A DNA stretch of 25,785 nucleotides from Paramicrosporidium saccamoebae KSL3 (lineage: Eukaryota; Fungi; Cryptomycota). The notes beneath the pieces are model-generated. The model was not told the DNA's origin. It searched no databases and saw only the letters and a list, made by a program, of their open reading frames with translations. Positions 1 through 25,785 of the stretch are shown here, piece by piece (position 1 is the first letter of the stretch; each line of letters begins with the position of its first letter). The stretch is from positions 1 through 25,785 of the forward strand of contig MTSL01000061.1 in the NCBI GenBank assembly GCA_002794465.1, in the 5' to 3' direction. The translations under genes were made by a program, and so were the position numbers.

Positions 1-740
1 TCAAAGCTGAGACTTTTGCTGGCACTTATGCTCGCATGGTATTCGTTGTAGTCCTTGCTGTGGCTGAAGCTGAGCGAACGGGACTTGTGCATGCGACGAC
101 TGACATCGAAGGCGTATGTGGAAGACTCATCGCAATTCTGAATAGTAATGCGACGGGTGTGATGGCGATGTTTGCGGGGCTTGACCTTGACAACGGTGTA
201 TTTGCGATTTGATTTGTCAAAGGAGACGCTCTTTCTCAAGTTCTTTGCCATGAATTCAGCACTCTCGCTGGCAGAGTATGAAACTCCGCGCTTCTGATGC
301 TTCTTTCCGCCCTTTCCGCCCTTCCCTCCCTTTCCTCCCTTTTCTGCTTTGGTGCATTTGCCGTCTCCTTTCTCGCATTTTTGGCCTGCCTTTTCACTCT
401 CAGAGATGGAAAGACTGACAGAGTAGCTTTGAGACTGCTTCTTGTGTGACTTTCGCATGGATTTTTCAGCGTGCTTTTTCATCCGATGACGAGTGACTTG
501 ACGATTGATTGTGGATCCGCTGGTGGAAGTGGTCCAATCTTGCTCAATGATAATGTTTGTGCGCTTGCGCTTATTATCAGCCTTCTTGAAATACTTTCCA
601 CGTGGACTCAGAGTGTTGCAGTTGTTGCAGGCCGGCTTCTTGCACTCCTCGATCGGAGCAGCGCCAAAGATGTGGGGGAGACTGAGAGCGCTTACGCTGC
701 TGATCAGGACAAAGCTCAAAAACTTGTTAGAGATGAACAT
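1..740 (-). CDS. Secreted basic K/R/H/S-rich orphan protein, 3'-truncated by the window edge (family member 1)
   Basis: Translated by hand; not in the ORF track because there is no stop in the window. ATG at 740 (AAAATG), 246 open codons: MFISNKFLSFVLISSVSALSLPHIFGAAPIEECKKPACNNC...YFKKADNKRKRTNIIIEQDWTTSTSGSTINRQV...(KGG)x4 KKHQKR...SKSLSF. Hydrophobic signal-like N-terminus; motif shared with the 10031 and 22984 genes. Confidence 0.85.
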   Translation of the reverse strand, partial: MFISNKFLSFVLISSVSALSLPHIFGAAPIEECKKPACNNCNTLSPRGKYFKKADNKRKRTNIIIEQDWTTSTSGSTINRQVTRHRMKKHAEKSMRKSHKKQSQSYSVSLSISESEKAGQKCEKGDGKCTKAEKGGKGGKGGKGGKKHQKRGVSYSASESAEFMAKNLRKSVSFDKSNRKYTVVKVKPRKHRHHTRRITIQNCDESSTYAFDVSRRMHKSRSLSFSHSKDYNEYHASISASKSLSF

Positions 741-793
741 TTTCAACTGCTTAGTCACGCTTTCGCGATACTCAACACGCACTTTGCGGCCTC

Positions 794-799
794 TTTATA
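794..799 (-). promoter_or_regulatory. Putative TATA box (TATAAA) of the 1-740 gene
   Basis: TATAAA on the minus strand about 54 nt upstream of ATG 740. Confidence 0.45.
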
Positions 800-877
800 G
801 TTGTCAAGACACATGAACTAATCAGGAAAATCTATTCAAATCAAAATTACAGTGCTAATACCATAGATGTTGCATAT

Positions 878-23387: not shown

Positions 23388-23671
23388 CCCACCACCACCA
23401 CTAACACGACACTCGATCTCACTACCATCGGCTCACCACTGCCAAAGTCGCGGCTATTCCTTACAGTATTCATCAAGTGAATAAATCTATAACCTACCAC
23501 TGCCGTAATAGGCAAAAAAATACGTATATTTTCGCTCATCACCAAATCCAAACATTTGTACCCATCACCAGAGGCAAGTTCAATGTCATGTTGGTACCAT
23601 TAAATGTCGCTATCCCTGGTCAATCGTTTAGCTTCCGACTATCCTCCTCTACACGCCATTCTTCGCAGGAC

Positions 23672-25330
23672 ATGACTGGAAAAAAGTCTGGCAACACAGA
23701 GGGTCGACGCAGTGCCTTTAAATTTAATGCCATGACCACAGACGAACTTCGCCGCCGTCGTGAAGAGACGCAAGTCGAGATCCGCAAGGCGAAGCGCGAG
23801 GACTCTCTCAACAAGCGTCGTAATATTGTGGACACTATTCCAGCGGCAGAGAGCATGTCCGAGTTGAAAGACTCGGTTCCAAGGGCAAAGGATTTGACAG
23901 CGGCAGAGTTGGCACAAGTGCTACCGAATGCAGTGCAAGGCATTTACTCAGAGGACATTTCAGTGCAGTACAAGAGTGCAGTAGAGTTCCGTAAGGCGTT
24001 GGCAGTTGAGCGTAATGCGCCCATACAGCTTGTTGTTAATAGCGGCGTGGTGCCGCGTTTTGTGGAAATTTTAGCCGGCCATACGGGAAACGCCACCAAC
24101 GACGAGGAGCGCAAGACCATGGAGGATTTGCAGTTTGAGGCCGCTTGGGTCCTTACCAATATTGCCTCTGGTGAGCCTGAACATACCATGGCTGTGGTGC
24201 AGGCTAATGCTGTCCCCGTGTTTATTGCTCTAATGCGTCATCACAATGGAGATATTCGTGAGCAATGTATTTGGGCTCTTGGAAACATTGCCGGCGACGG
24301 ACCGAAGCTTAGAGATTACGTACTTCAAGAGGACATGATGTCTCCACTCTTAGAAAATGTCGCCTTTGCCCTCGAGAACGGTGCTCAGCCAATTTCGGTG
24401 GTAAGGAACGGCGCTTGGGCTATTTCCAATCTGTGTCGAGGAACTCCTGCCCCATCGTGGAACCAAGTGGTTGTAGCTCTGCCCATTGTCTTCCGCCTGC
24501 TTCAGGTTCAAGATAATGATACGTTGGTAGATTGCTGCTGGGCCCTTGCCTACATGTCGACTGAAAATGATGTAATTGGAGAAATTGTTCAGGCCGGAAT
24601 CGTCACTCATCTTGTACCTCTACTTGGCAATCCGGGAGTCTCCGTCCAGGTCCCTGCGCTGCGGGCCGTTGGAAACATTGTCACTGGTGCTGACACACAG
24701 ACGCAAGCAGTAGTTGATGCTGGTGCTTTGCCGCTGCTCCGCAACTTGCTGAACCATTCAAAGACTTCCATTGTTAAGGAGGCTTGTTGGGCAATCTCTA
24801 ACATTACGGCAGGCACTCCTGAGCAGATTCAATCCGTCCTGGACGCCAACATTGTTCCCAAATTGGTTCATCTCTTGTCCTTTGCAGATTTCAAGATTAA
24901 AAAAGAATCATGCTGGGCACTTTGCAATGCTACCTCTGCCCATGAGACGCATCCCCACCAGGTGAAATATCTCGTATCTCAGGCAGTCATTAAGCCCCTG
25001 TGTGATCTTCTTGACGGATGTCAAGACAGTCGCGTGATCCTAGTCGCCCTCGATGGAATCTCTAATATTCTCAGCGTGGGCGAGCAAGAGGCGCTTCTCT
25101 CGCCCGACAATACCAATCCGTACGCCCAGTTTGTTGAAGAAGTCCGTGGTCTCGACATAATTTGCAGCCTACAAGATCACCCGGAAACGGACATTTACCT
25201 CAAATCCAAACAGATTATCGACAAGCACTACGAGGGCGAGGATGACGAAGATAACCTGATCGAGGCAGAGAATTCATTCCAGTTTAATCCTTCGGCCGCT
25301 GTGCCACAGGGAGGCTTCAAGTTTACTTAA
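23672..25330 (+). CDS. SRP1: Importin subunit alpha (karyopherin alpha)
   Basis: IBB domain RRSAFKF...ELRRRREETQVEIRKAKREDSLNKRRN; ARM repeats LQFEAAWVLTNIASG, EQCIWALGNIAGDG, KEACWAISNITAG, KESCWALCNAT. Likely ATG 23672 (552 aa); an upstream in-frame extension exists but looks non-coding. Confidence 0.97.
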   Translation: MTGKKSGNTEGRRSAFKFNAMTTDELRRRREETQVEIRKAKREDSLNKRRNIVDTIPAAESMSELKDSVPRAKDLTAAELAQVLPNAVQGIYSEDISVQYKSAVEFRKALAVERNAPIQLVVNSGVVPRFVEILAGHTGNATNDEERKTMEDLQFEAAWVLTNIASGEPEHTMAVVQANAVPVFIALMRHHNGDIREQCIWALGNIAGDGPKLRDYVLQEDMMSPLLENVAFALENGAQPISVVRNGAWAISNLCRGTPAPSWNQVVVALPIVFRLLQVQDNDTLVDCCWALAYMSTENDVIGEIVQAGIVTHLVPLLGNPGVSVQVPALRAVGNIVTGADTQTQAVVDAGALPLLRNLLNHSKTSIVKEACWAISNITAGTPEQIQSVLDANIVPKLVHLLSFADFKIKKESCWALCNATSAHETHPHQVKYLVSQAVIKPLCDLLDGCQDSRVILVALDGISNILSVGEQEALLSPDNTNPYAQFVEEVRGLDIICSLQDHPETDIYLKSKQIIDKHYEGEDDEDNLIEAENSFQFNPSAAVPQGGFKFT

Positions 25331-25408
25331 TTCCATATTCCAAATAAACCAAAACTTACATCAAGCTAATTGCGGTTGTTTATCTAATGGGCCATATTAT
25401 ATCGTTAT

Positions 25409-25785
25409 TTACGAAGAGGAGCTTTTGGAGGACGTGCTAGACGACTTGCGGGCTACTTTGTTCTTGCATTTTTTGTCTTTGCAGCACTTGACTGGCTTGG
25501 GACACTTTTGTCCCTTGGGACACGGCTTGGGACGAGAACACTTTGGAGGACGGGGACAGATCTTGCGGATCTTGCACGGCTTGTTCGGGGGACACACTTT
25601 GACAGGAATACGCTCGAATGCACAAATGTCCTGTGACGAAGAGTAGCTGTAGCTCGCAGATGCCTTTCCATGCTTCGTCTCAATCGATTCAGAGTAGGAC
25701 TTGGAGACTGAAAGATGACGGGGTCGCTTTCCCTCATCAATCTCACGCTTCTGATGTTTCTTTCCCGTCTGCTTGCGTCCACTCG
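25409..25785 (-). CDS. Lys/Cys/Pro-rich basic orphan protein, 5'-truncated by the window edge (family member 5; paralog of 9345)
   Basis: The frame of the 25409-25597 ORF is open to the window end: SGRKQTGKKHQKREIDEGKRPRHLSVSKSYSES...ASASYSYSSSQDICAFERIPVKVCPPNKPCKIRKICPRPPKCSRPKPCPKGQKCPKPVKCCKDKKCK...SSSS (124 aa visible). Confidence 0.85.
   Translation of the reverse strand, partial: SGRKQTGKKHQKREIDEGKRPRHLSVSKSYSESIETKHGKASASYSYSSSQDICAFERIPVKVCPPNKPCKIRKICPRPPKCSRPKPCPKGQKCPKPVKCCKDKKCKNKVARKSSSTSSKSSSS

Follow-up and report, generated by a model that had tools for sequence, protein, structure and literature searches.

Contig MTSL01000061.1 of Paramicrosporidium saccamoebae KSL3, analysed over 25,785 nt (the window), encodes members of a family of predicted secreted, highly basic orphan proteins. 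Judged by sequence comparison, this family is real, clade-restricted and previously undescribed, and it is partly missed or mis-modelled in the public annotation. The organism is an intranuclear parasite of Saccamoeba (Quandt 2017, eLife, PMC5701793), and its genome of 7.3 Mb (46.9% GC, 221 scaffolds) was assembled from 80-nt reads with Velvet (k=53), while the Maker annotation drew on spore RNA (PMC5701793). A preliminary description of the window had proposed a dispersed family of six loci, numbered L1 to L6 here, and translation recovers all six reading frames that it listed. Six loci are nonetheless too many: L1 is the N-terminal and L6 the C-terminal half of a single architecture, called type I below, and the window is predicted to hold five gene types, not six. 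What survives of the proposed family is that its two motif families, A and B, are physically joined in one gene; L4 is unrelated to the rest.

We treat L1 and L6 as one architecture because full-length L1+L6 orthologues are present in two metagenomes. Both the 404-aa protein P0003 (JGI metagenome 3300042203) and the product of locus L006, a 1,079-bp contig, consist of an L1 part, a variable Lys-rich linker and an L6 part. The L1 part contains a signal peptide, module A, a variable Lys/Gly/Glu linker and module C, and the L6 part contains (S-x)n runs, C-A-FER[IV]P, a periodic Cys/Pro/Lys tail and poly-Ser. L1 shares 82-85% identity with residues 1-257 of P0003 (tblastn and MAFFT), and L6 shares 81% with its C-terminal part, rising to 85% over the best tblastn segment. 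The L006 product shows 59% identity in the best tblastn segment and 68% to P0003 (MAFFT).

Three modules recur. Module A is defined as a hydrophobic strand followed by [DEQM]W[TS][TS]S[TS][TS]xSTI and a basic segment, and is carried by L1, L3, L5, P0003 and the L006 translation, and is missing from L2, L4 and L6. Module B comprises (S-x)n runs and C-x-FER[IV]P-x-C followed by a basic Cys-rich tail; it is found in L2, L6, P0002, P0003, P0004 and the L006 translation, and is missing from L3, L4 and L5 (P0002 and P0004 are metagenomic relatives of L2, introduced below). Module C is a near-invariant middle block, RKYTVVKVKPRKHRHHTRRITIQNCDESSTYAFDV, whose core is identical across three organisms (KSL3 L1, P0003 and the L006 product). 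Modules A and B can be considered real because their similarity exceeds that of shuffled sequences in Smith-Waterman comparisons, made after removal of signal peptides against 500 global and 500 local (15-aa) shuffles. The z-scores (global/local) for module A carriers were 16.3/10.7 for L1-L3, 9.2/7.2 for L1-L5 and 3.9/3.5 for L3-L5. The pair L2-L6 reached 5.0/2.6, and the C-x-FER[IV]P core of module B is kept in three proteins from other samples. The motif KKHQK[RQ], which had been thought to link L1, L2 and L6, does no better than shuffles (-0.3/-0.4 for L1-L2, 0.8/1.5 for L1-L6) and reflects composition. Modules A and B appear to be linked physically, in one predicted gene, and not by homology.

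At the DNA level, the type-I orthologue at locus L004 spans the two ends of the contig. Positions 519-1400 of L004 align to window positions 849 to 1 and positions 1480-1908 to window positions 25777 to 25343, and 71 nt of L004 (1401-1471) bridge the two contig ends in a manner compatible with the reading frames; no exact overlap between the contig ends was found. Either L1 and L6 form a single gene, in which case the Velvet contig is a circular graph path, a tandem unit or the product of a wrong traversal, or the gene exists twice, with the copies 24.7 kb apart in direct orientation and each interrupted at one and the same low-complexity linker. The linker at the break is indel-prone and 17 aa shorter in the L006 product. 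Because both contig ends meet inside one gene, the contig might even stand for a nuclear DNA unit of ~25.9 kb, circular or repeated in tandem, that includes housekeeping genes, which is the less likely reading.

Homology with L004 is limited to the coding sequence, 109 nt upstream and 66 nt downstream, and the neighbouring genes differ: XPB/ERCC3 and a ubiquitin hydrolase in L004 (3-305 and 1904-2302, both on the minus strand and assigned by reading translated fragments) versus PRP6 and importin-alpha in the window. Given such short shared flanks and different neighbours, the type-I gene is best described, from these alignments, as a cassette that has been moved or copied. A homology search for the KSL3 XPB locus, which might hold a second copy between XPB and the ubiquitin hydrolase gene, gave no KSL3 protein. 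The best XPB match (locus L007) belongs to an unrelated GC-rich eukaryote and has no family gene, while locus L008 comes from a close relative with a short XPB flank and L009 has 168 nt upstream of the XPB gene.

The position of L2 is conserved. Locus L005 (run SRR33465434) is collinear with window positions ~7,100-9,600: a Pex2/12 RING gene is followed by a Mago-binding gene on the opposite strand, a Med26/IWS1-like gene and, at the position of L2, the gene for the 163-aa protein P0004, its syntenic orthologue. P0004 still has a signal peptide, (S-x)n runs and the motif in the form C-D-FERIP-A-C, while its tail is rich in Cys/His/Arg and not in Cys/Lys/Pro. We conclude that L2 is, on the evidence of this synteny, an independent conserved gene. 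In the NCBI annotation a single 888-aa model spans the Pex2/12 RING, Med26/IWS1-like, L2 and L3 frames; it looks chimeric, because L005 has these as separate genes. A 70-aa open reading frame (ORF) lying antisense inside this model matches the Pfam family Mago-bind (PYM) with E=3.8e-11 and is conserved in L005, and the public annotation has no separate gene for it. Only L4 and L5 (111 aa) are called as such by NCBI, and L1, L2, L3 and L6 are not separate genes there. The present analysis thereby corrects gene models on this contig.

Substitution patterns indicate that the reading frames are real genes. Across module A, L1 and L3 differ at 8, 10 and 19 sites in codon positions 1, 2 and 3, and 9 of 17 identical residues are encoded by different codons; across C.FERIP, L2 and L6 differ at 2, 3 and 9 sites, respectively. 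In comparison with the L004 orthologue (81% nucleotide identity, dS 0.7-1.06), the ratio of non-synonymous to synonymous substitution rates (dN/dS) is 0.20 for L6; for L1 as a whole it is 0.08, with lower values in module A (0.03) and module C (0.06). The third-position bias and the low dN/dS together argue for protein-coding sequences on which purifying selection acts. The codon-usage log-odds lend only weak support to the proposed frame of L1, L2, L4, L5 and L6 and are ambiguous for L3, but this score is weakly informative for such compositions and we used substitution patterns instead; for L3, the frame is supported by its protein-level conservation with L1.

These data bear directly on the alternative that we are dealing with chance ORFs and compositional look-alikes in low-complexity DNA. 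The weak codon-usage score of L2 and the ambiguous one of L3 would agree with it, as would the low-complexity repeats that open ORFs in several frames around L2 and the fact that four of the loci are not separate genes in the NCBI annotation. Against it stand the third-position-biased divergence of the paralogues, the orthologue dN/dS of 0.03-0.2, the syntenic orthologue of L2, the full-length L1+L6 orthologues in other samples and shuffle z-scores of up to 16. We regard this alternative as wildly improbable and as effectively refuted for L1/L6, L2, L3 and L5; only the membership of L4 falls.

The distribution of the family is narrow. A word-indexed search of 5.8 billion proteins returned only L5 itself for the module A profile, the word index being unreliable for low-complexity proteins, and only P0002 for the module B profile. 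This search overlooked P0003 despite exact stretches of more than 30 aa in common with the queries, and its negatives weigh little. When 1.84 billion representative proteins were searched exhaustively with HMMER and the module B profile, only P0002 (138 aa, an L2 homologue on a 37%-GC contig of run SRR23867091), P0003 and P0004 came up, and no microsporidian, Rozella or other protein matched. The L006 product was the sole addition from a metagenome DNA scan for C-x-FER[IV]P. There are at least four relatives besides KSL3, with a locus GC of 37%, 41%, 46% and 51%, and as far as module B goes, for which alone the search was exhaustive, Paramicrosporidium-like organisms look like the only carriers of the family. 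The preliminary description had recognised no Pfam family in these proteins, and indeed nothing appears at E<=1 beyond three weak, sub-threshold compositional matches (AF-4, SR-25 and DUF1178, E 0.15-0.77). Sequence and profile searches of the PDB gave no significant match (best E-value 0.39), and searches of the literature yielded neither a paper on the sample accessions nor an earlier description of such proteins in Paramicrosporidium.

The proteins are rich in Lys, Arg, His and Ser and in part in Cys, as had been described, with net charges of +14 to +53, isoelectric points (pI) of the mature proteins of 10.1-12.0 and composition maxima of 22% Lys, 25% Arg and 23% Ser. L3 represents one extreme (25% Arg, 23% Ser, mature pI 12.0). 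L2 and L1/L6 have a pI of 10.1-10.2, 15-22% Lys and 6-16 Cys, with conserved Cys columns located in the Lys/Pro-rich periodic tail. Cys counts are 16 in mature L2, 10 in L6, 6 in L1, 5 in L3, 3 in the L4 ectodomain and 0 in L5, compared with 13 in P0003. Alternating (S-x)n runs recur, in which x is often Y, V, F, L or I, and these would form amphipathic strands. Signal-peptide-like starts, also proposed earlier, are present at all five visible N-termini according to a heuristic based on n-region, h-region and 10-residue Kyte-Doolittle mean: a positively charged start is followed by an uncharged run of 12-20 residues, and the best 10-residue mean is 2.0-3.1, versus 0.1-1.4 in seven control proteins of the window. 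By the same heuristic the N-terminus of P0002 is signal-peptide-like too, unlike the controls. No membrane anchor or glycosylphosphatidylinositol (GPI)-like hydrophobic C-terminus was seen in L1-L3, L5 or L6.

Several of the genes also share a promoter feature. The motif TATAWAW occurs at 12 sites on both strands of the window, and five of the 12 lie in sense within 121 nt upstream of L2, L3 and L5; a TATAAAG is common to L1 and its L004 orthologue. None of 11 other gene starts checked has a TATA box within 200 nt upstream. Because TATA boxes are concentrated at the family genes, these probably have a distinct, strongly regulated mode of expression.

As to their function, we tentatively favour the idea that these are exported, disulfide-crosslinked proteins belonging to the matrix of the spore wall or of the polar filament over the idea that they are effectors for the host nucleus, while giving it somewhat less than an even chance; secretion, cross-linking, spore localisation and expression timing are what we infer, not what we observed. 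The genes would be transcribed from strongly regulated TATA-box promoters, and their products, consisting of few short modules (A, C and B) set in polybasic low-complexity sequence, would enter the secretory pathway via a cleavable-looking signal peptide for the endoplasmic reticulum. Assembly could then rest on the (Ser-x)n runs as amphipathic strands, on charge interactions, and on disulfides that the Cys-rich tails form between molecules, and the proteins would match microsporidian PTP1, PTP2 and spore wall proteins in function but not by descent. We lean towards a structural role mainly because of strong purifying selection and the periodic Cys/Pro/Lys tails, together with the tandem clustering of L2, L3 and L4 on one strand, the TATA promoters and the failure to find filament proteins in KSL3. 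Spores of P. saccamoebae have a polar filament, and hidden Markov models of known polar filament proteins detected nothing in the proteome (PMC5701793), therefore lineage-specific proteins must build it. That the type-I A+C+B protein (L1+L6) and L2 are the chief missing building blocks of the Paramicrosporidium filament or spore wall, as part of an independent protein set that takes the role of microsporidian PTPs without being homologous to them, is a doubtful proposition.

Known structural proteins offer partial parallels. SPRR, keratin-associated proteins and SMCP occur in cornified or sperm structures of animals, where they are crosslinked by disulfides, and their short periodic Cys/Pro/Lys repeats are comparable, by analogy only, to the (KKPC)n and C-x5-C-type tails; such periodicity suggests, by this comparison, a cross-linkable structural polymer. 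The two groups are unrelated in sequence, taxon and cell biology, and the likeness would be compositional convergence only. PTP1 and spore wall proteins such as the Cys-rich EnP1 type, which has basic heparin-binding motifs, are secreted, low-complexity, Cys-bearing structural proteins that are specific to their lineage and serve the spore or the invasion apparatus, as the proteins described here would be; Ser/Thr-rich stretches are candidates for O-mannosylation. To the spore wall proteins the likeness is by description only, with no homology detected, and PTP1 is acidic and Pro-rich, whereas the proteins studied here have a pI of at least 10 and at most 10% Pro.

The closest parallel is PTP2. 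Microsporidian polar tubes dissolve only in reducing agents and are held together by disulfides, and PTP2s are basic, Lys-rich, Cys-bearing proteins with a signal peptide whose sequences change very fast from one species to the next; the ptp1 and ptp2 genes usually lie next to each other, and the PTP2 of Anncaliia/Antonospora has Ser/Gly-rich N-terminal repeats and eight fixed Cys in a conserved C-terminal region (PMC10229552). The proposed resemblance to PTP2 holds for composition and layout of the B-type proteins and does not extend to sequence or profile similarity. L2 and L1/L6 share with PTP2 the signal peptide, the basic pI, the abundance of Lys and several conserved Cys; the B-type proteins, like the PTP2 of Anncaliia/Antonospora, have a Ser-rich repetitive part before a Lys/Cys-bearing C-terminal part, and L2-L4, like PTP2 genes, lie in a small tandem cluster. 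Unlike in PTP2, the Cys of the B-type proteins lie in a short periodic Cys/Pro/Lys low-complexity tail after C-x-FERIP, and modules A and C have no PTP2 counterpart. L3, which is Arg-rich rather than Lys-rich, and L5, which has no Cys, are outside the Lys-rich, Cys-bearing profile.

Several results weigh against the interpretation as spore-wall or polar-filament proteins. Comparison of the module B profile with A. algerae PTP2c gave an hhalign probability of 0.8%, and at E<=1 none of the six proteins matched a PTP family in Pfam-A; membership in PTP2 was rejected. The Cys-bearing region of A. algerae PTP2 is a non-repetitive ~240 aa with its eight fixed Cys. With only 5 Cys in L3 and none in L5, disulfide cross-linking cannot be a common principle of the A-type proteins. 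The extreme pI of 10-12 and the Arg/Ser-rich stretches would suit nucleic-acid binding too. An AlphaFold2 model of L1 from a 4-sequence alignment has no confident fold (mean pLDDT 46.7, pTM 0.19), with three weak beta-strands falling in module C. Finally, the signal peptides were called with a home-made heuristic and not with SignalP.

The rival that we take most seriously, which we still consider rather unlikely, is that the proteins are secreted, host-directed effectors that bind host chromatin, DNA/RNA or nuclear polyanions through their polybasic sequence and remodel the amoeba nucleus; their Cys/His-rich tails might then bind zinc instead of forming disulfides. In the nucleomodulin-type effectors of eukaryotic parasites that live inside cells, a signal peptide occurs together with polybasic clusters resembling nuclear localisation signals (NLS), and the proteins described here have similar starts, similar clusters and an extreme basic charge. 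The A-type members L3 and L5 are Cys-poor, the Arg/Ser-rich L3 is protamine- or SR-like, and the tail of P0004 is Cys/His-rich. The parasite develops inside the host nucleus (PMC5701793), the shuffled modular architecture and the type-I cassette in another genomic context are features often seen in effector families, and the TATA promoters would fit stage-specific expression. On the other side, selection on the modules is strongly purifying with no diversifying sign (dN/dS 0.03-0.2), and no DNA-binding domain is recognisable in Pfam or PDB searches. Moreover, 10-16 Cys in Pro/Lys tails are typical of oxidised extracellular matrices and not of the reducing nucleoplasm, while NLS-like clusters are uninformative at this composition.

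There are two further readings. The proteins could coat the surface of the growing parasite or form an interface layer there, such as a glycocalyx on the plasma membrane of meronts or sporonts, held by charge or by partners such as L4; their role would then be neither structural in the spore nor manipulative towards the host. The presence of signal peptides agrees with this, as does the tandem arrangement of L2 and L3 with L4, a predicted membrane protein with a basic ectodomain, and Ser/Thr-rich patches such as module A could be O-glycosylated. Since L1-L3, L5 and L6 have neither membrane anchor nor GPI-like C-terminus, and L4 is not homologous to them, we consider a surface coat improbable. 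Even less credible, and in our estimation very unlikely, is that these are highly diverged true homologues of microsporidian PTP2 or PTP1. They would have in common the signal peptide, basic pI, Lys-richness, several Cys, tandem clustering and a Ser-rich region before a Lys/Cys-rich C-terminal part. This reading is opposed by the Pfam and hhalign results, by the exhaustive module B search without any microsporidian protein and by the lack of polar filament protein matches in the KSL3 proteome (PMC5701793). There is also no acidic, Pro-rich ptp1-like gene near L2-L4, where neighbours have a pI of at least 10 and at most 10% Pro.

If the proteins do belong to the filament or spore wall, they would for the first time give molecular access to the question whether Rozellomycota and Microsporidia owe their polar filament to a single origin, which Quandt 2017 left open (PMC5701793). 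If they are instead effectors of the host nucleus, candidate nucleomodulins would be in hand for a rozellid for the first time. We believe that they are concrete candidates for proteomics and localisation, part of which the public annotation has missed, and modules A, B and C can serve as queries for mining Rozellomycota genomes and metagenomes.

L4 had been counted as a family member, which we reject because it has a different architecture and no above-chance similarity to any other locus (z at most 1.8 in any pair); it is kept here as a neighbour. Its common ground with the other loci is charge and signal peptide only. The sequence contains a repeat (RNIGQRHVSEQ) and two IMHPW motifs, and the tail after the transmembrane segment is acidic (pI 4.6) and poly-Asp-containing, so that L4 is probably a type-I membrane protein with a cytosolic poly-Asp tail. 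Searches in Pfam and the PDB, the only ones made for L4, found no homologues.

Table 1. Positions of the family loci, their promoter motifs and neighbouring features in the window
Feature	Position	Strand	Description
L1	740 to 3	-	First 246 codons of the type-I gene; frame open at left contig end; signal-peptide-like N-terminus, module A (W of WTTSTSGST at 536), module C (RKYTVVKVKPRKHRHHTRRITIQNCDESSTYAFDV)
L1 repeat	303-342		9-nt x4.4 Gly/Lys repeat
L1 upstream region	741-849	-	81% identical to region upstream of L004 orthologue; TATAAAG box
L1 TATAAAG	about 795	-
NCBI 888-aa model	7094-10579	+
Mago-bind (PYM) ORF	8149-8358	-	70 aa
L2 TATAWAW	9251 (-94), 9312 (-33)	+	Upstream region 9251-9344
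L2	9345-9914	+	Complete gene, 189 aa; signal peptide, (S-x)n runs, module B (CEFERIP at 9537), basic His/Lys/Gln C-terminus
L2 tail	9631-9712		(KKPC)n encoded by 12-nt x6.8 repeat
L3 TATAWAW	9910 (-121), 9997 (-34)	+	Upstream region 9910-10030
L3	10031-10579	+	182 aa; signal peptide, module A (WTSSTSSST at 10223)
L3 tail	10450-10501 (poly-Ser run)		Arg-rich, with 5 Cys
L4	10736-12100	+	454 aa; signal peptide, basic ectodomain, transmembrane segment at residues 387-414, acidic tail
L4 repeat	10911-11045		33-nt x4.1
697-aa protein	12247-14337	-	Annotated
423-aa protein	16826-18097	+	Annotated
L5 TATAAAT	22893 (-91)	+
L5	22984-23319	+	111 aa; signal peptide, module A (WTTSSTGST at 23134), no Cys
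L5 tail			Basic, with 21-nt x2.4 repeat
L6 3' flank	25343-25408	-	Alignable to L004; homology ends 12 nt before the importin-alpha stop codon
L6	25783 to 25409	-	Last 124 codons and stop of the type-I architecture; frame enters from right contig end; (S-x)n runs, module B (CAFERIP from 25624), periodic Cys/Pro/Lys tail with 10 Cys, poly-Ser C-terminus

The window has 48% GC and contains no Ns. A six-frame scan for the motifs and for basic ORFs with signal-peptide-like starts found no further family member in it, and the remaining genes are ordinary nuclear housekeeping genes. They encode PRP6, an rRNA-processing protein, a PAK-type kinase, a metallo-beta-lactamase-fold protein and the Pex2/12 RING protein, as well as the Mago-binding protein, the Med26/IWS1-like protein, TFIIF-beta, ribosomal protein S11/S14, a Sec7 BIG-type guanine nucleotide exchange factor and importin-alpha. 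The L2-L4 tandem is flanked by the Med26/IWS1-like gene and the gene for an unknown 697-aa protein. Both this protein and an annotated protein of 423 aa have no Pfam match, and the former contains two to three hydrophobic segments.

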